Source: Bugula neritina
Lineage: Eukaryota; Animalia; Bryozoa
Assembly (NCBI GenBank): GCA_964035545.1
Contig: OZ037765.1
Span: 1,612,001 to 1,676,000 of the forward strand
Reading direction: 5' to 3'
Length of the DNA stretch: 64,000 nt
Part shown: one piece after another, positions 395 to 13,347 of the stretch
Layout: every line of letters starts with the position of its first letter
Numbering within the stretch: the stretch's first letter is position 1
Notes under the pieces: model-generated
Databases searched by the model: none
What the model saw: the letters and a program-made list of their open reading frames with translations, nothing else
Told to the model about the DNA's origin: nothing
Translations under genes and position numbers: made by a program

Positions 395-1122
395 GTTATA
401 CATTGTAATATATATTACAGTTGCTAGCATGGACTGTGTTATACCATGTAATATATATTACAGTTGCTAGCATGGACTGTGTTATACCATGTAATATATA
501 TTACAGTTGCTAGCATGGACTGTGTTATACATTGTAATATATATTACAGTTGCTAGCATGGACTGTGTTATACCATGTAATATATATTACAGTTGCTAGC
601 ATGGACTGTGTTATACCATGTAATATATATTACAGTTGCTAGCATGGACTGTGTTATACCATGTAATATATATTACAGTTGCTAGTATGGACTGTGTTAT
701 ACCATGTAATATATATTACAGTTGCTAGCATGGACTGTGTTATACCATGTAATATATATTACAGTTGCTAGCATGGACTGTGTTATACATTGTAATATAT
801 ATTACAGTTGCTAGCATGGACTGTGTTATACCATGTAATATATATTACAGTTGCTAGCATGGACTGTGTTATACATTGTAATATATATTACAGTTGCTAG
901 CATGGACTGTGTTATACCATGTAATATATATTACAGTTGCTAGCATGGACTGTGTTATACCATGTAATATATATTACAGTTGCTAGCATGGACTGTGTTA
1001 TACATTGTAATATATATTACAGTTGCTAGTATGGGCTGTGTTATATCATGTAATATATATTACAGTTGCTAGTATGGACTGTGTTATACAGTGTAATATA
1101 TATTACAGTTGCTAGCATGGAC
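395..1122 (+). repeat. 43-bp minisatellite, about 17 copies, containing the caspase 3' splice site
   Basis: Unit TTGCTAGCATGGACTGTGTTATACCATGTAATATATATTACAG. AG ends recur every 43 nt from 420 to 1108; the last is the real acceptor. Confidence 0.97.
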
Positions 1123-3285
1123 TACACTCAAATGGACTGCTTGTTTGTGGCTGTGCTGTCACACGGAGATGAGAACCATTTGTTTGCTGTCGACAGAGCC
1201 ATCTCCTACGAAATGCTGACGAGTCCCTTGAAGTCAGACCGTGCTGCGTCTCTGATAGGCAAACCTAAACTCTTTCTCTTTCAGGTAAGTGTACAAGTTA
1301 GAGGTAAATGTACAAGTTTGAGGTAAGTATTCAAGTTAGAAGTAAGTATACAAGTTAGAGGTAAGTGTACAAGTTAGAGGTAAGTATACAAGTTAGAGGT
1401 AAGTGTACAAGTTAGAGGTAAGTGTACAAGTTAGTAGTAAGTGTACAAGTTAGAGGTAAGTGTACAAGTTAGAGGTAAGTGTACAAGTTAGAAGTAAGTA
1501 TACAAGTTAGAAGTAAGTATACAAGTTAGAAGTAAGTATACAAGTTAGAAGTAAGTATATAAGTTAGGAGTAAGTTTACAAGTTAGAAGTAAGTATACAA
1601 GACTTCTAACCATGTTGAGGAGTAAAAACTACATGTTTGTGTAACTCCCAGTTGCTATTGTAATTATGAAACTTATTGCATGTATGCAAGGGTAAATGGT
1701 AATTGGTAAAGCCTTAGTTTTAAGAATTCCTCTGCTTATAAAGGTGGGGGTGTCTGTTAATGTTCCTAAGCTATATGTGGGTCCTAGTTTATAGTTTCAG
1801 TTACCCTTTCTGTAGCCAGCCTATGCAGTATATATCAGTATAGTTTCCTTATCATTGGGAAATACAAAATCTATTGTAACCTTTTATGACTCATCCTTTA
1901 TTTACATTCAGTGATGCAATAACCACTCTAGTAAGGTGGTTACTATAGGGTGTTGGCTACAGTTGTGTGTTTTTATTTATTCTGTGCATCTTCTAAGAAA
2001 GGAAATAAAAAACAGTTCAGCAGCAACAGCGTGTTTACAATAACCTTTTCAACCCACTGACTCAATCATAATGTTATTGTATTGTAAAATGTTTATGACT
2101 TCGTGTAATCAACGGTGGAGTGTTTGTTAATACTGGTCTTTTCACTCTTAGTATTAGCTGAATGGCCATCATACAAATTGTAAGAGTTATCTTTTCCTCA
2201 TAAACTGTTTATTGCTTGTATTGCAACCAGCTTTCATATTAGCAAGTTTGAAATATATAGAGCTCATCTAGTGCGTAAAATATGTCTACCAGTACTAAAA
2301 CCCCCATAAAACAAAGTGTTTTATAGATGCTTTGTGATGGTTAGACTACTATTAAATCTTTCAGCTTTGTTGCTCTAACAGTTACATGTTGTGGCAGAGC
2401 AAGTTTTATAGCCTTAGCTCATATTTTATAGACTTAGCTCATGGTTTGTAGCATTAAATCTTGCGAATTAGGTATATAGTATAGTTGTGTATGTAGGCAT
2501 GCAGAGGCGAGAAGCTAGACGAGGGAAAACTCTTACAATCTGATGCATTTCCTGGTGGAGAGAATAAGCAGTATTTCATAGCCAAGGAATCTGACTTTCT
2601 TCTTGCTTATTCTACTGTCCCAGGTACTGCCCCCCCCTCCAGATATTCTACTGTTCAGAATACTGGGCTACAGCCTAGCCACAGTTCCACAGCGTTTATA
2701 AAATCTGTCATAATCGAAGAGTTGAAAATAAAAGCAATAACTTGGAATGAGAAAAAAAGTTATAGTTTGATATATTTTGTTCTTTTAAAATTCGTGTTGT
2801 TTGCTTTGTGTTTTTAGTGAAAATGATATTGTAAATATTGTTATCATAATTCTTGAGAAAGTTTCATTTTGGCATTCACCTATCCTAATATTTGTTTAAA
2901 ATTTACTATTTAGAACATGTTATGGAATACATTTTGCTGTAATATATAATACTATACTTTATGTCATTTGCTATGCTATGTATTACATAATACTATAATT
3001 TATTGTATAATGTATAGTATTACGTATATTATTACGTATAGTATTACATACTCTGCAGGCTACTACTCATGGCGGAACTGTGCAAACGGCTCGTGGTTTG
3101 TGCAGGCGTTTTGTGAGGTGATGTTGAGAGATGGCAGAAGGCTGGAGTTTGTTCAGCTTCTCACTAGAGTAAACAGAATGGTCTCTTACACCTTCCAGTC
3201 TAACGCCAGTCAGTTCAGTATGACCAATAAGAAGCAGAGCCCCTGCATCACCTCTATGCTCACCAAGTCACTCTACTTTGCGTGA
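1109..3285 (+). CDS. Effector caspase (caspase-3/7-like), 3' part; 5' exons lie before the window
   Basis: Exons 1109-1284, 2497-2623 and 3059-3285 join in phase. They give ...DCLFVAVLSHG... (catalytic His), GKPKLFLFQ|ACRG (catalytic Cys), a linker with LQSD/A, then DFLLAYSTVPGYYSWRN..GSWFVQ and QSPCITSMLTKSLYF*. Confidence 0.95.
1285..1601 (+). repeat. 19-bp minisatellite, about 17 copies, containing the caspase 5' splice site
   Basis: Unit GTAAGTGTACAAGTTAGAG repeats every 19 nt from 1285 to 1589; the first copy is the real donor. Confidence 0.97.
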
Positions 3286-4624: not shown

Positions 4625-4830
4625 AACTATAAAATATAAATATAACTATTAGTATTAGTATTACTATTAGTATTAGTATTACTATTACTATTAGTATTAC
4701 TATTACTATTAGTATTACTATTACTATTAGTATTACTATACTTATACTTATAGTATTACTATTACTATTAGTAATAGTATTACTAATAGTAATACTAATA
4801 GTAATAGTAATACTAATAGTAATAGTGTTG
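4625..4830. repeat. (ATTAGT/ATTACT)n low-complexity tract
   Basis: Visible period-3/6 repeat upstream of pseudo-caspase A. Confidence 0.9.
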
Positions 4831-5955: not shown

Positions 5956-8195
5956 ATGGCAGGTATTGCTTACAAAGAGTTTGAAGACACAGACTTCATG
6001 TATCGAATGAGATCAGGGTGGGGGAAATATTATTTTAACGATATAATCTATATCGATTACAATTTAATAAATCAATCAACATAAAAGAAACATCAGTCAC
6101 AACTATACTAATAATAGAAGAAAGAATTATCGTCATTTTTAACTAAACTGTAAAGATTAAAATTTGTTTCAGTTATAACTATTATTCGGAAGTTTAAAGA
6201 GACTTATTCTGATAGATTTATTTTACGGTGTACAATGTTTATATATGAAGAAATTACCTTTCTTCTGTTGTGTGAGTGTTTGCTGTGATGTTTCAAGTTT
6301 TGTGATACATACCATGTTGCAGTCACAAAGGTATAGCTATAATCATCAACAATGAGAAGTTTGACTGTGAGCTGAACGTAGTAGACAGACTCAGTTCACA
6401 GCCACAACTCAAAAGTCTCAGATCGGCTCTCTCGTATATCGGGTATAAAGATATAAGAATTTACAAAAATTTAACTGGCAAAGAAATATGTCAGCTCCTT
6501 AAAACAGGTGAGTTGGTAAAACTCGATGTGAATAAAGCCTATTCTTCAATTTAAATTAATAATGTTATTATTTGTCTTGTAATTATTTTTTCAATATATA
6601 ATGTGAAAAGCTGTCTGAATTTGTTCTCAGTTGTGGACAAAGACTATCGGAGTCGAAGGATGGACAGCTTTTTCCTGGGGATATTTTCCTATGGGGATGA
6701 GCGTAATATCTACGCAGTAGACATCATGTTATCTCACCAAATGCTAATGGAACCTTTAAGAGCTCTAGCTCATATACCTAAAATCATCATTGTACAAGTA
6801 TGTGTCTTATATATACACTATACACTACTTACCTTGTATATACACTATACAGTATGTACTTTATATATGCACTCTGCACTACTTACCTTATATATACACT
6901 ATAGGGGTTAGAGCGTTTGCCTAGTAAACATGAGGTCATGGGTTCGAGCCCAGACAAAGGCCATTGGTGATGTTAGGAAGAGCATCCAGTCATAATTGCT
7001 CCTGTGCCTCATTTAAACAAGTCCTTAGCCCACTTTTACAAAAACCCTTTCCATCAGGGGTTTCTCACAGGGATAGTGACTATAAACTTGCGTGAGTTTT
7101 ATGTACCATCTATGTATATACACTACAGTGCGTACCATATATTTAGGCCCATCAAGTTGACGCCCAGCCATCTCATTACCTTCTAGAAGAGCAGAAGCGA
7201 ATGCAAGTCACTCAACCAATGGACGGCGGAAGTGAATACTTCTATGACCACATACCTCCCGCTCTAAACCCGCTACGTCGTCATTCTGACGCCATATTTG
7301 TAAACTCTGTGCTCAGAGGTGAGCAAAACCAACCATTATTTTTCCTAAATGTCATGTTTTTGTCAGGAAAACTTGTGACAAGTGATTCCGTTATTGTTAA
7401 ACTTCAGTTGTTCATTTACTTAGAACAAGTAATTCATCGCTCCACTTTTTAAGTATTGTTAGTTATTCGACCACCTCTTATCCTATTCATCACTACAACC
7501 AATCACTGAGCAGTTTTACTAGCCTAAGTTCTTTTATTTTATTAGTGAGTTTTGATTTGGACTCAGGTTAAAGTTCTTGCTTGAACATAACTTCCCTTGC
7601 TACATATCTGATTTAGGACACTAGATTTTCTTAATTTCTCTTTTACTGCATCTTCTGCTTTATTCACTTCACTCACTCACCTACTCATGCACTCACTCAC
7701 TCACTCACTCATACACTCACTCATATACTCACTCACTCACTCACTCACTCATGCACTCACTCACTCACTCATGCACTCACTCACCCACTCACTCACCCAC
7801 TCATGCACTCATTCACCCACTCACTCAATCATTCACCCACTCACTCACTCGCTCACTCACTCACTCACTCATTCACTCACTCATTCACTCACTCACTCTT
7901 TCACTTACTCACTCTCCTAATTCTTTTAACCCTTTTAACGATGTTATTCATATAATAAGTTAACCTTCCATCAATGTATGCACGTACTTTACTTCTAGGT
8001 TCAGAGTTTATAGAAGCTCTCTGTGATGTGCTGAGATATGATGGAAGAAAGTTAGAGATCATGAAGTTACTAACCCGAGCTACTCGTATGATGTCATACG
8101 GCCCACACACACCTGTTGAGTACTGTCATCCGAACAAAGACCTCCGTTACCCCAGTGTCTTCTCTGTTCTTACAAAAGACTTTTACTTCTACTAG
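5956..8195 (+). CDS. Catalytically dead caspase paralog A (pseudo-caspase), about 260 aa
   Basis: Exons 5956-6017, 6323-6507, 6631-6797, 7147-7318 and 7999-8195 all have GT-AG ends and join in frame (783 nt). Caspase motifs KGIAIIINNEKF, KNLT, PKIIIVQ and SVLTKDFYF are present. SHG has become SYG, QACRG has become QAHQV, and YYSWRN is missing. Confidence 0.85.
6904..7089 (+). mobile_element. tRNA-derived SINE-like insertion in intron 3 of pseudo-caspase A
   Basis: Pol III A-box-like GGTTAGAGCG and B-box GGGTTCGAGCCC at tRNA-like spacing, followed by a non-tRNA body. It interrupts a TATATACACTA-type intronic repeat that resumes afterwards. Confidence 0.65.
7665..7915. repeat. (TCAC)n microsatellite
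   Basis: Visible tetranucleotide repeat in intron 4 of pseudo-caspase A. Confidence 0.95.
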
Positions 8196-9029
8196 CTTTC
8201 ATCAAACAAGCCTCAAACTAAAACACATTCGGATTTAACCCTAAAGTATTGTTCATTATAAGGAACATTTCAATCTATTTTTTGTATTTTCAAGTTACTC
8301 ATGTTCTATAGTACCCATCAATGCAGCATGGGTTGAAGATGAACCATCAACATTTCAGACCGTGCTCTCCATTAACATTGCTAGATAAATTTATTTTACT
8401 GTTTTTTAAACTATTCTACACAATAGATTCTTCATATTTTCATTTAATCATGGCTCTATAACATGAAATAAGTGTAAGTATGATATGCATAGCTATAACT
8501 TTTCTATATGATTTCTAAAAGGTTAAATTTTGATTTATGTATCATTACATTATATTTTGCTTAACAGAGGTTCTGCTTATAATAAATAACTGAATGTAAA
8601 TTTTGACATTTGATTTTATTGTGCTTAGATATAGCATTTCTGTCCATGAGATAGATTTAAATATATTTGTATTTTTGCATGCATAAAGTTGTCTTTTCTT
8701 TCACCCAGTTACTGCGCCTTATGTAGCACCAGAAAAATGTTCGTGAAAACTTGTCATCTTACAAGTTGTCTTCTCCTTGTTCTTTTCCTAAAACACTAAT
8801 ACTGGGAAGTTTCTATTTTATTACGACTTCACAACAGCTTACTATTCATAGCTGTTAAAAGTGGGTTTTCCATAACTACTACTTTGAGCACTCCATTAAC
8901 GTTAAGATTATCAATCTGAGTATCAGCTAAAAATTCTTATCTACCTTGTAACTAGTGTCTGGCGATTACAATAGAAACTATTTTTCAACAGCTATATCTT
9001 CCTAGCTATCAAGACTTGAATAATTAGTA

Positions 9030-10075
9030 TCAGTATGAGTATGACTATAACTATAAGTTAAAGTATAAGTATCACTAGAAAACTATAAAGTATAAACTTG
9101 AAGTTGATCATGATGTGATATTGGCTGACTGTGACTTATTATCGTAATCATAATGATAATGACCAATGGTTATCATTGTGAACTATTACTGTAACTATAA
9201 GTCTATAAATATTACTATTAGTATTACTATATTAGTATTAGATTTACTATAAGTATAACTATTACTAATAGTATTAGTATTACTATCAGTATGAGTATGA
9301 GTATCACTATGAGATATGAGTCATAGTTATAGTATGAGTATCAATGAGTATTACTATTCAGTATTCGTATTAGTATTACACTATTAGTTATTACTATTAG
9401 TATTACTCTAAGTCTATTACTATTACTATAAATATTAGTAACACTATTACTATTAGTATTAGTATCACAGTATTACTATTAGTCTGTTAAATTTAGTTTT
9501 ACAATTAGAATTACTGTATTACTAATACTATTAGTATTATATTTAATTTTACTATTACTATTAGTATTACTATTTTTATTAGTATTGCTGTTAGTGTTAG
9601 ACTTAGCATTATATTAGTATAACTATAACTATAAGTATTACTACTAGTATTAATATTATAATAACTATTAGTATTACTGTTGGTATTATAAATATATTAC
9701 ATTTACTAGTAGTATTACTATTAAACTATTACTAATAGTTAAACTTATTTGTGATCATAATGATAATGACTTATGCTTGCTTCTACTTTTAGTGTTATGC
9801 TTATAGTTGTAGTTAGGCTTACACTAATACTTAAAGTCTATAAGTGTTACTATTAGTATATGACCCCCCAGTCATTTCAATCAGAAATAGTAAGAGTCGT
9901 AGTCTAACACTTAGTTTTACTATAGTGTAACTGTAAGTATAAAACATTAACTTTAAGTTTAACAATAACTATTGCTATTTCTTACTCTTAATCTTACAAT
10001 TACACCAAGTCTAACTGATTTATGATACTGTAAGTACTGCTGGTGCTGTTATTACTGGTAGTAGTAGTAATAGTT
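9030..10075. repeat. Long degenerate period-6 (A[G/C]TATN)n tract
   Basis: For example AGTATGAGTATGACTATAACTATAAGT; upstream of pseudo-caspase B. Confidence 0.85.
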
Positions 10076-10474
10076 TAAGGAATCTTCACAAAGGTTTGTG
10101 AAGTTTCACTGAACCAATAACTCACTCAATTAGAAAGTAACACTAATTCCAACACCCAATTGAGTGCTGTGTAAACTGTACTGACCTGGCAAGCATTAAC
10201 CTGATTCTATTCCAAAATAAAAATCTTATTAGAGTGTAGCTCACAGAGTCTTTTTCATTCATTTTAATTGTTAGTATTCAATGTATTATTTGGTAAACTC
10301 ATTTAAATTTTGTGTTTAAGTTTTACAGAGAAATGAAATCATAGGTCTATAGATTTTCAAAATACTTTGTCTCATTTGGATTTTGTTTTTCTGCAGATTT
10401 ATGATTTTTGTTTTGAATCAAGTTACGTCAGCAAGAGCTTAGATGGTCTTACTATGTTTTAGAATGGTTATGCT

Positions 10475-13347
10475 ATGGCAGCATTCAGTTCATCCGAAGT
10501 GAGGCCAAGCCCAGCAAGACCAAGTGGTCTTTCTTATATTGATATTGACGAGGGACTATTTTCAAATAGGAAACACAAAAAGTTTGTTCCTGATAATTGT
10601 AAAGTTCTTCCGTCCATTCAATGTGTTACTCTGTTAATATTTTGCTATGAATGTGAATTTATCCTAAGCTGTCTACCAACTTTTAGTCGACTGTCCGTGG
10701 CATGTAATTCATAATCCACAAACTACAGCATATTTCTAAGTCATTATAAAATCTTGTAACTTTAACTTTTTATTGGTTTTTAGACATGTTCCCATACATT
10801 TGATAATGTGAGTTTCATCATAATTTTGTCTGATTGATTTTATGCTAAGAAAAACATGAGTGAATGTAAAGTTTGGTTCTATGTATAAAGTATTAGTAAC
10901 AGAGGATTTAGCTTGGACTTACCTAAGGTTAAAGGTTAAACTCAAACCACTTTTGGACTGATCCTGATATCATGCAGAGAGTAAACCACAAAAATTCTTT
11001 TAGCACCATCCTCTCTCCCTGAGCAATAACTCTCAATGGCTAATTAGGGATCAGTTATTGTTTTGCAATAAGTGTTTGTTTTTGAAAAATAGAAGAGTAG
11101 CTGATCCAGTAAACATTGAGATCTAAACTTGTTTTACTTCTTTTACAGGAAAAAGAAAATAGCTCTAATAATCAACATTTCTAGATTTACTCGATATGAG
11201 TTACCCAACAGACCGGAATCTGATGAGAAGAGGGACAAGCTCATACAAGTTGCGAGATTTCTTGGTTTCAAAGACATTCGTTTGTCAGAGAACTTGATTG
11301 CTCAGCAAATTATAGAATTATTAACCACAAGTAAGCTGCTTATATTTATTGAATAAAATTTCCTCTTATAATAGTGTAAACTGCCAAATCTTGATTGATA
11401 CTATATATTTAAAAACAAATAGTTTTTAGCAACTGTATATAGACTGGACACCTTAGCTTTGAGATAAAAATATTGTCTATTATTTAACTTGCTTTGGCCA
11501 CTTCAAGGATTTTCTACAAACCTTGTCATAGATGAAATTCTTAATATTTCAATTGGCCTCACTATGAGCATAATTATGACTTGTGTTCAGAATTGATAGG
11601 CAATAACACTTAAGGCTCTATTGCTTAGAGTACAAACTTAAATAATATTAGTAAAAAAAAATTTTAAAGCTAAATTCAATTGTTGAATGCCTGACGTAGA
11701 ACATTATTTTATATGAACTTTTCTACACAATTTCTTTCCTGCTAAACCAAAGTTAAAACTTTTGAATGTTGAAACTTCACTTGCTGAAACTGAAGTTACC
11801 CAACTTGTGACCAACTTGGCCTTCATTGTAGCTTTTCTCATATTTGCCCCAGTTATCTGAATGATTCAATTCCTATTCAACGTAATTAACTTTTGAATAC
11901 AAATATTTTGTCTGTTTAATAAATGCTCAATGTCATGATAAATTTGTAGTTGCATCGGATACGTCATATGACTTGGGTACCCTACTGATATTCTTCCTGA
12001 CATATGGCACTGATAAGAATATCCACGCCACTGACAAGACCATAACTTATAATACTTTGAAGGAGCCGCTCAAACATGCGAATATGAATGGCACATTCAA
12101 ACTCCTCTTCGTTTCTGTAAGTGTGATTCACAGAATATCGCAGGGTCACTTGTAGTTTTGTAAAAACAATTGTTGTAGCTTTAAAATGTTCATTACTCAA
12201 ACTTTATGGGACTCAACCCCAAGTGTGTGTTATTTAGATAAGCTTAATTGGCAAAATATTATGTGGGTAAGAAAATTGATGGCTCTATATTTATTTACTT
12301 ATTTAATTTCTTTTAAATATTATTTACCTACTTTTATTTATTTAATTTTTTTGACTAATCAACTATGCAACAAATGTGCCTAATTATTGCTTATATGAGT
12401 TTAATTCTTCAAGTTATTTTATATTGTAGTTACTATAATATATGCATAGATAGTATAAAACCTTGAAACTAAAGACTATCCAAAGCTAAAATATTTCTTG
12501 TCGAGAAATAGAAGAATTTTTAAAATTTGAAAAGTAGGCATGGTTTTTGTTTCAGGCGTGTCCCCCTCCGCCAGATGTCAGAGTGCCAGAACTTGACTGG
12601 AGGTTAGCTGTCGACAATCTGGTGCCTCGCTTGCGTATTGAATATGACGCTGCTGTGTTTGGATCTCGGAGAAACTATCAAGTTTACGAGGAACTGGATT
12701 TCTTGTTGGCTTATTCTGTATATAAAGGTAACCTTAGTTTAGATATAAAACTATTAGCATTAAATATACCACAGCCCTTCAGTTACTATACATACGACAC
12801 TTGTCACAGCCCTTTAGTTACTACACATACGACACCTGTCACAGCCCTTCAGTTACTATACACGACGACTCACCTGTCACAGTCCTTCAGTTACTACACA
12901 TACGACACCTGTCACAGCCCTTCAGTTACTATGCACGATGACTCACTTGTCATTGTCTTTCAGTTACTACAAATGTCACGCCTGTTCACCCTTCATTTAA
13001 TTTACGTGTTACACAAATCAAATAAAGGAAAAAACAGTTCCGACTCGAGTTAATTACAAAAAAACCGACTTTAATATTTAGGTATCAAGTTTAATACAAA
13101 AGTATCTATACAGATACACATACCATGCAATCTATGTTTTCTTGTTTTAGAATTTAACTTCGTGGATGCTCTTACAACCGTTTTGCTGAGAGATGGGAAG
13201 AAGTTGGATATTTTTACTCTTCTGGCGCGAACACATCGCATGATGAGATACGGTCTCGGCGCCAACCCGGCAACATGTCAAATACAGCAGAGTCTGCCAT
13301 TTCCACGAGTCATATCAACGCTAACTAGTACTTACTATTTCTTTTGA
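10475..13347 (+). CDS. Catalytically impaired caspase paralog B (pseudo-caspase), about 274 aa
   Basis: Exons 10475-10581, 11149-11330, 11950-12116, 12556-12727 and 13151-13347 join in frame (825 nt). Motifs KIALIINISRF, LGFKDI, DFLLAYS and STLTSTYYF are present. SHG has become TYG, QACRG has become SACPP, and YYSWRN is missing. Confidence 0.85.
12770..12970. repeat. 35-bp tandem repeat, about 5 copies
   Basis: ACAGCCCTTCAGTTACTACACATACGACACCTGTC-type units start at 12771, 12806, 12841 and onward. Confidence 0.9.

Follow-up and report, generated by a model that had tools for sequence, protein, structure and literature searches.

Candidate pseudo-caspases clustered around an effector caspase gene in the bryozoan Bugula neritina

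Pseudo-caspases are few and are mostly known as single examples, such as FLIP(L), CSP-2/3, and CASPS18. In Caenorhabditis elegans, CSP-3 and CSP-2 are caspase homologs without catalytic function; they bind the zymogen of CED-3 and limit its autoactivation. FLIP(L) has been reviewed as the only human pseudo-caspase (PMC7586951). In Aedes aegypti, CASPS18 lacks its own catalytic domain and is regarded as enhancing CASPS19, according to a passage of PMC4840389 that cites Bryant et al. 2010. In the oyster, caspase-3/7-like genes, some of them tightly clustered, lack the catalytic His or Cys; one of them, Cg3A, has a Tyr at the His position, and the authors suggest that catalytic function was lost (PMC7836458). 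Here, we analyze a 64,000-nucleotide stretch of the Bugula neritina genome (assembly GCA_964035545.1, contig OZ037765.1; hereafter the window), in which two genes, A and B, lie downstream of a canonical caspase-3/7-like gene, C. Upstream of C stands a further gene, U, so that three conserved effector-type paralogs surround one executioner. We consider it fairly probable that A, B, and U are selectively maintained pseudo-caspases, expressed in the case of A and B, that act as non-catalytic partners in a caspase pathway.

Conservation and transcription of genes A and B

The models of A and B were rebuilt from the window coordinates, translated, and checked for stops and splice sites. They agree with the initial annotation, which had described two stop-free genes with canonical splice sites and the intron positions of C. 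Gene A has five exons (783 nt, 260 aa), as does gene B (825 nt, 274 aa); neither contains an internal stop, and all eight introns (8/8) are bounded by GT..AG. The intron phases (2, 1, 0, 1) are likewise identical to those of C, and one of the common introns splits the Q from the A of the QACRG motif. The exons, all on the forward strand, lie at 5956..6017, 6323..6507, 6631..6797, 7147..7318, and 7999..8195 in A and at 10475..10581, 11149..11330, 11950..12116, 12556..12727, and 13151..13347 in B, where exons 4 and 5 are placed by the rebuilt model and the alignment. The strong divergence claimed for the two proteins is also borne out (29% identity). The description as a tandem pair holds insofar as A and B follow C in tandem, with spacings on the shared strand of 2.7 kb from C to A and 2.3 kb from A to B, but the locus is in fact a four-gene cluster, U(-), C(+), A(+), B(+), in which U stands head-to-head with C and three genes are predicted to be dead.

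A second B. neritina assembly, GCA_010799875.2, allowed us to follow the fate of these genes. The database match of B exon 4 is "hypothetical protein EB796_024234 [Bugula neritina]" (P0001), the ortholog of B, and the contig encoding it runs collinearly with the window (about 84% identity, gaps included). Since synonymous divergence (dS) is about 0.2, the window and this assembly represent sister lineages rather than one population. At the orthologous locus (L002, L009), the exon lengths and splice sites of C, A, B, and U are all identical, the start and stop codons of A and B are each conserved, and the Tyr, QAHQV, and ACPPP motifs discussed below are the same in both lineages. The ratio of nonsynonymous to synonymous divergence (dN/dS), calculated between the window and this locus by the Nei-Gojobori method (NG86), with bootstrap 95% intervals for C, A, and B, is 0.041 in C (95% interval, 0-0.11; dS, 0.21), 0.082 in A (0.03-0.17; dS, 0.17), 0.139 in B (0.07-0.24; dS, 0.22), and 0.089 in U (dS, 0.23). 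The binomial P values against neutrality range from 2e-10 to 2e-14, and the intervals lie far below 1. Constraint on B is slightly weaker than on C (P about 0.02); for A, no clear difference from C is seen. Purifying selection is distributed over the whole chain, not just over the last strand. Furthermore, the coding sequences of A and B, 1,608 bases in total, contain no indels, whereas the introns, with K values of 0.06-0.28, carry many.

In the public B. neritina models, A is split into EB796_024232 (P0055) and EB796_024233 (P0010) because of an extra C at L002 position 7421, where a C-run in exon 4 (C4 versus C3) produces a +1 frameshift. A second copy in that assembly, L070 (P0048 and P0049; EB796_003573/003572), has C3 and keeps exon 4 in frame; its own frameshift lies at about 3565, in exon 3, which reads T4/G3 there versus T5/G4 in L002 and the window. 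The two copies otherwise show 0 to 6 aligned differences per exon and none in exons 1 and 2, the exon 5 count being inflated by clipped ends, and no gap occurs in A exon 3 or 4 in the RNA contigs described below. Because the copies are nearly identical otherwise and the RNA contigs are gap-free, we read the frameshifts as homopolymer assembly errors between two copies of one allele. The public models, in which these errors split A into two "hypothetical proteins," are corrected here.

If A and B were decaying or recently dead pseudogenes, still open and transcribed, this would account for their lost catalytic residues, for the very long branch of B in the tree, and for the split public models of A. 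However, dN/dS values of 0.08-0.14 with upper 95% limits of at most 0.24, the absence of coding indels next to indel-rich introns, and the retention of all splice sites in two lineages at a dS of about 0.2 argue against decay, as do two reading frames that are only 29% identical and yet both open. The frameshifts, moreover, reflect homopolymer lengths that differ between copies of one allele, and the RNA contigs do not show them. Neither disrupting stops or frameshifts, nor lost splice sites, nor a dN/dS near 1 is thus seen across the two lineages, and we regard the pseudogene explanation as extremely unlikely. Together with the spliced RNA, these data sustain the earlier proposal of selected pseudoenzymes: A and B are very probably selected pseudo-caspases rather than decaying genes.

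RNA contigs were aligned over window positions 6200-12199, a stretch that takes in A exons 2 to 5 and B exons 1 to 3. They derive from runs X1 (symbiont-metagenome RNA-seq), X2, and X3, which represent at least two studies. Gene A is represented in each run by one contig, which joins 6322-6504, 6628-6797, 7147-7316, and 7997 onward, corresponding to joints 6507/6631 (exons 2 and 3, in X1, X2, and X3), 6797/7147, and 7318/7999; the X2 contig reaches 8675, which places the end of the 3' untranslated region (3'UTR) at about this position. For B, contigs join 10461-10581, 11149-11328, and 11950-12114, with exon 2 joints in X1 and X2 (11330/11950 on its 3' side), and the X2 contig, 2,330 nt long, continues past the aligned stretch. 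All these joints fall at predicted GT..AG sites, within a 2- to 3-nt ambiguity, and the exons are gap-free, so that the junctions predicted by the initial annotation are recovered from A exon 2 to exon 5 and from B exon 1 to exon 3. Among the differences listed between the contigs and the window, 19 synonymous and 6 nonsynonymous ones lie in A. The contigs carry the base differences that distinguish the B. neritina assembly (L002 type) from the window, indicating that the RNA evidence stems from the sister lineage.

The same contigs bear on the possibility that A and B are not genes of their own but alternative 3' exon sets of gene C, as their common strand, their spacing of 2.7 and 2.3 kb, and the identical intron phases might suggest. 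The B contigs begin at 10461-10468, 7-14 nt upstream of the ATG in B's own first exon, and join exon 2. The A contigs from three assemblies stop 83-97 nt before exon 2, and these extra letters fit exon 1 plus a short 5'UTR. Such separate 5' ends indicate separate mRNAs. Moreover, none of the listed joints links A exons to B exons, and each gene has its own conserved start and stop codon. We therefore consider shared exon sets to be just as improbable as decay. The likely start of B is the conserved ATG at 10475, since a TAG in the window's genome closes the 14-residue N-terminal extension (10433-10474) of the NCBI model P0001.

Catalytic residues, substrate loop, and fold

Gene C provides the canonical reference. 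Its exons 1 and 2 lie upstream of the window, in C1:1602001-1612000 (L001). Exon 3 (1109..1284; PF00656, 37.7 bits) encodes the SHG motif with the catalytic His; exon 4 (2497..2623, from the rebuilt model) encodes the ACRG of QACRG and the intersubunit linker; and exon 5 (3059..3285; PF00656, 58.9 bits) encodes the full L3 loop (SWR, GSWF), the C-terminal strand, and the stop codon, all on the forward strand. The ortholog of C (P0053) carries the name "CASP3" in the B. neritina annotation. The motif changes claimed for A and B are present in the rebuilt models. The catalytic His is replaced by Tyr in exon 3 of both genes (SYG in A, codon 6690-6692; TYG in B, codon 12003-12005). In exon 4, QACRG has become QAHQV in A, with His at the position of the catalytic Cys (7150-7152), and SACPP in B, where the Cys is kept (12559-12561, ACPPP). 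U has SYG and no Cys where its exon 4 should begin with ACRG. Compared with the dyad of active caspases (SHG ... QACxG), A thus has Tyr/His, B has Tyr/Cys, and U has Tyr and no Cys.

The S1 arginine in the SWR motif of the L3 loop binds the P1 Asp of caspase substrates, and L3 residues form the S1-S4 groove. Exon 5 is 197 nt long in both A and B versus 227 nt in C, and the 10 residues (30 nt) missing at its start include this arginine. The deletion is seen both in the alignment of P0001 with Spodoptera caspase-1 and in the motif table. U, in contrast, retains the loop (TWR ... GSHF). These residues suggest that A, B, and U have lost protease activity. For A and B, the term "catalytically dead" used in the initial annotation is backed by the His-to-Tyr change and by the loss of L3 and its S1 arginine; the Cys is kept in B.

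We know of no caspase that works with Tyr in place of the His. Nevertheless, A and B, or at least B, could still be proteases of non-canonical mechanism or specificity: the Cys of ACPPP is kept in B in both lineages, the related Watersipora proteins described below keep His and Cys despite a short L3, and oyster Cg3A, with Tyr at the His position, is developmentally regulated (PMC7836458). Against this, His and Cys are both missing from A, and Cys is missing from U; A and B have, moreover, lost the L3 residues that make up the S1-S4 groove, among them the P1 Asp-binding arginine. Non-canonical proteolysis is therefore very unlikely in our view.

When exons were scanned one by one against Pfam, PF00656 (cut-off, 21.4 bits) was matched by A exon 2 (23.4 bits) and A exon 5 (22.7 bits), while the match of B exon 2 was weak (18.1 bits). 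The caspase homology of B is nonetheless secure because its full-length ortholog, P0001, matches caspases by both sequence and structure. Indeed, phmmer aligned residues 42-283 of P0001 with PDB caspases (1e-6), and an AlphaFold2 (AF2) model based on a 23-sequence alignment has a confident core, with 114 residues at a predicted local distance difference test (pLDDT) score of >=90, with the prodomain and the linker disordered. The model shows the caspase order of strands and helices, ending in the last strand. Its best Foldseek matches are caspase-7, pro-Sf-caspase-1, caspase-3, and caspase-6 (probability, 1.0; target template modeling [TM] score, up to 0.83). The B ortholog is thus predicted to have a caspase-7-like fold. 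For A, no full-length protein was found in the databases: a profile of A exons and relatives returned fragments only, and the query P0055 returned P0049 only.

The prodomains are short, with 20-50 residues before the first strand. This length and the closest PDB and Foldseek matches (Sf-caspase-1, caspase-6, -3, and -7) are those of effector-type caspases. No CARD, DED, or other Pfam domain was found in the exon scans, and the tandem DED that marks the FLIP family is accordingly missing from them. Asp-containing motifs are present at the prodomain position (EDTD in A exon 1, IDID in B exon 1, and DLDD in C) and in the linker encoded by exon 4 (IEYD-A in B, VEYD-A in its ortholog, and D-H in A). 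At the other end of the chain, exon 5 of both A and B keeps the C-terminal strand, as the initial annotation had noted. In effector caspases, this last strand forms the dimer interface.

History of the clade and genomic setting

Translation, dN/dS, blastp against selected database proteins, alignment, and tree building relied on the joined exon models of the four genes; database searches were run per exon or with database proteins. HMMER with P0001 over 1.84 billion representatives gave 39 matches at an E value of <=0.001. The nearest relatives are P0003, a transcript contig of SRR31736957, and the Watersipora subatra proteins P0040 (XP_067934957) and P0018/P0052 (XP_067947822 for P0052), all labeled "caspase-3-like"; conversely, the best match in the window's genome to both P0040 and P0003 is A exon 5. 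P0003 has TYG and QADPI, while P0040 (THG and QACNP) and P0052 (SHG and QACKA) keep His and Cys. In all these relatives, L3 is shorter by 6 residues, versus 10 in A and B. In P0003 and both Watersipora genes, an xxxD-A motif occurs in the linker, with roughly the spacing to the following strand that the IEYD-A of B has.

In a maximum-likelihood tree, the bryozoan sequences form one clade (support, 99/98). Nested in it is a short-L3 clade (95/90) made up of A, B, P0003, and the two Watersipora genes, to which U is sister (92/83). The other bryozoan branch comprises the canonical genes, namely, C, three distant paralogs of C, and the Watersipora caspase-7-like P0042. B sits on a very long branch. 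The placement of A and B among caspase-3/7-like sequences is in line with the initial annotation; the tree adds that their subfamily is old and includes Watersipora members that keep the dyad. A and B are therefore not a recent pair but belong to an old cheilostome-bryozoan clade.

The order of the Watersipora genes on OY755158.1, where canonical P0042 (about 71.45 Mb), P0052 (71.32 Mb), and P0040 (71.17 Mb) share one strand, mirrors C-A-B. This conserved order speaks for an old A/B duplication, whereas the shared 197-nt exon and the Watersipora pair as sisters speak for lineage-specific duplications or gene conversion. The approximately unbiased (AU) test does not reject A and B as one clade (p 0.35), so that their duplication may predate or follow the Watersipora split. 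We conclude that L3 shortening and linkage to a canonical gene are older than the split between Bugula and Watersipora and that the dyad was lost afterward, at least two times, within the short-L3 clade. One of these losses lies in the Bugula genes and another in P0003, and the Watersipora genes retain the dyad. Such repeated loss after L3 shortening suggests that catalysis was already dispensable in the clade. The locus and Watersipora together offer a natural series for tracing how a regulator can arise from a protease, in which loss of the substrate loop preceded repeated loss of the catalytic residues. Tyr at the His position is also found in the caspase-3-like P0014 (from the snail Bulinus truncatus), P0009, and P0035 (the last two from run assemblies), which have QACPM, QTCPP, or QACKY motifs. 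All three branch outside the bryozoan clade, implying that the His-to-Tyr change arose repeatedly.

Gene U lies on the minus strand of C1:1602001-1612000, with exons at 3804-3692, 3283-3093, 2652-2471, 1824-1710, and 768-533 of that stretch. It encodes 278 aa, has the intron phases of C, A, and B, and is intact in either lineage. The B. neritina annotation has U as part of a 467-aa model fused with a weak PHD_Pygo match, probably a mis-fusion, since the model lies partly within 4.6 kb of sequence that the window's genome lacks. Another three canonical genes resembling C (SHG, QACRG, WR) are found at C1:3.615-3.638 Mb (cluster C1:3615001-3641000), 2 Mb away. By sequence, they appear to be the closest active paralogs of C and are additional candidate partners for A, B, and U. 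The 216-Mb genome contains at least 177 six-frame PF00656 matches. Both His and Cys are kept in 55 of its 60 best PF00656 loci, a census skewed to canonical sequences; the 150 matches listed, out of 177, do not include A, B, or U. It therefore gives only a lower bound on the number of dead copies.

Repeats flank or interrupt several of these genes. Exon 3 of C is bordered by two minisatellites that copy its own splice signals: one at 394-1123, on the 5' side, has 17 copies of a 43-bp unit that contains the acceptor and the first exon bases, and the other at 1283-1601, on the 3' side, has about 17 copies of a 19-bp unit that starts with the donor (AG|GTAAGT). Both arrays are present in the B. 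neritina locus too and could supply many cryptic splice sites. Long, imperfect TATTAC/TATTAG hexamer arrays occupy 4641-4826 in the C-A spacer and 9182-9734 in the A-B spacer, and similar arrays occur in the B. neritina locus. Finally, A intron 3 contains a dispersed short interspersed nuclear element (SINE)-like repeat (about 6900..7100) that is matched by thousands of partial contigs in all four runs, with summed contig depths of thousands to hundreds of thousands. This highly transcribed repeat has a tRNA-like box, although ARAGORN called no tRNA in it. Run X5 matches only this repeat, which also accounts for much of the small word shares (0.05-0.06) in the sequencing-run search.

Possible roles and described counterparts

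We favor the view that A, B, and U are pseudo-caspases that retain an effector-caspase fold, a short prodomain, a linker between the subunits, and the last beta-strand but have lost Asp-directed proteolysis. The loss would have come about through replacement of His by Tyr, through replacement of Cys by His in A or its absence in U, and, in A and B, through deletion of L3 with the S1 arginine, L3 being shortened first and the dyad lost afterward, more than once. Selection on A and B (dN/dS, 0.08-0.14) and their spliced RNA contigs are what is expected of caspase-fold proteins maintained without catalytic capacity.

Such proteins could act by two routes. They may pair through the dimer interface with canonical paralogs such as C, damping or boosting their activity. 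The kept strand makes heterodimerization with C plausible, and we put forward only tentatively that A and B work by pairing with C or its canonical paralogs. By analogy with described systems, the effect could be either damping, as for CSP-3, or enhancing, as for CASPS18 and for FLIP(L) at low dose. Alternatively, A and B may serve as cleavable decoys: as Asp motifs persist at their prodomain and linker positions, they may still be cut by caspases.

Several points weigh against this view. Pairing with C, and an effect on its activity, are suggested by the strand and by adjacency; the strand belongs to the core sheet as well, and its retention is therefore no proof of dimerization; adjacency to C shows no functional coupling. 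B keeps its Cys and the Watersipora members keep the dyad, so that non-canonical catalysis in the clade is possible. The RNA comes from the sister lineage and not from the window's own individual, and the contigs, which give no expression levels, were aligned over a stretch that ends before the last two joints of B. Finally, with a +1 frameshift in A exon 4 of one copy and another in A exon 3 of the second copy, a null allele is formally possible.

A selected role that does not involve pairing with C, with A and B as decoy substrates, as a sink for inhibitor of apoptosis proteins (IAPs), or as scaffolds in immune or other signaling, strikes us as rather unlikely, although it ranks above the other alternatives. 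The prodomain motifs EDTD and IDID, the linker motifs IEYD-A and VEYD-A together with xxxD-A in the relatives, purifying selection over the whole chain instead of the last strand only, and an old clade with repeated dyad loss would all fit such a role. Conversely, short acidic motifs carry little weight, the linker position of A reads D-H and not D-A, and the known effector-type decoy, CASPS18, acts on a paralogous caspase. More specifically, the short-L3 clade may have consisted of caspase-cleavable switches, non-proteases since the trimming of L3 before the Bugula-Watersipora split. Cleavage at the linker Asp (IEYD-A in B) by an upstream caspase would expose an Ala-first N terminus that resembles IAP-binding motifs; cut forms would then soak up IAPs in a feed-forward manner, or uncut forms would cap canonical caspase monomers. 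We hold this combined scenario to be improbable. If it were true, three genes around one executioner would amount to combinatorial control of the massive cell death in bryozoan metamorphosis and polypide recycling.

The pseudo-caspase reading of A, B, and U can best be judged against the systems introduced above. As described in the cited passage, Aedes CASPS18 is a short-prodomain effector-type paralog without catalytic capacity that is co-expressed with an active paralog and regarded as a decoy enhancer, and in this it resembles the Bugula set. Nevertheless, CASPS18 belongs to the insect Decay-like lineage and its enhancing effect is experimental, whereas the Bugula set is known from sequence and comprises three genes around one, an old clade, and members without L3. 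Like A and B, FLIP(L) is a caspase-fold paralog without catalytic residues that is kept by selection; it heterodimerizes with an active caspase, which it inhibits or activates. Unlike FLIP(L), which has tandem DEDs and an initiator-caspase partner at the death-receptor complex, A, B, and U are of effector type, with short prodomains and no DED or CARD. CSP-3 is essentially a small subunit only, while the Bugula proteins keep both subunits and the linker. The Bugula locus also lends itself to asking whether dead partners can tune effector caspases, which form dimers constitutively.

The oyster Cg3A and the Cg3/7-like A-H clusters are, like the Bugula cluster, lophotrochozoan expansions of caspase-3/7-like genes with the same His-to-Tyr change, although the mollusc Tyr-bearing matches fall outside the bryozoan clade in our tree. 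The oyster genes are known from sequence and expression, without a selection test, and no L3 deletion has been reported for them. The closest counterparts are Watersipora P0040 and P0052, which belong to the same short-L3 clade and also lie downstream of a canonical caspase-7-like gene on the same strand; they differ from A and B in keeping His and Cys and in an L3 shorter by 6 residues rather than 10. The principle of a non-catalytic caspase paralog is thus already known, and what the Bugula locus adds to it is a test for selection, evidence from RNA, a third gene, and a clade history that extends to Watersipora.

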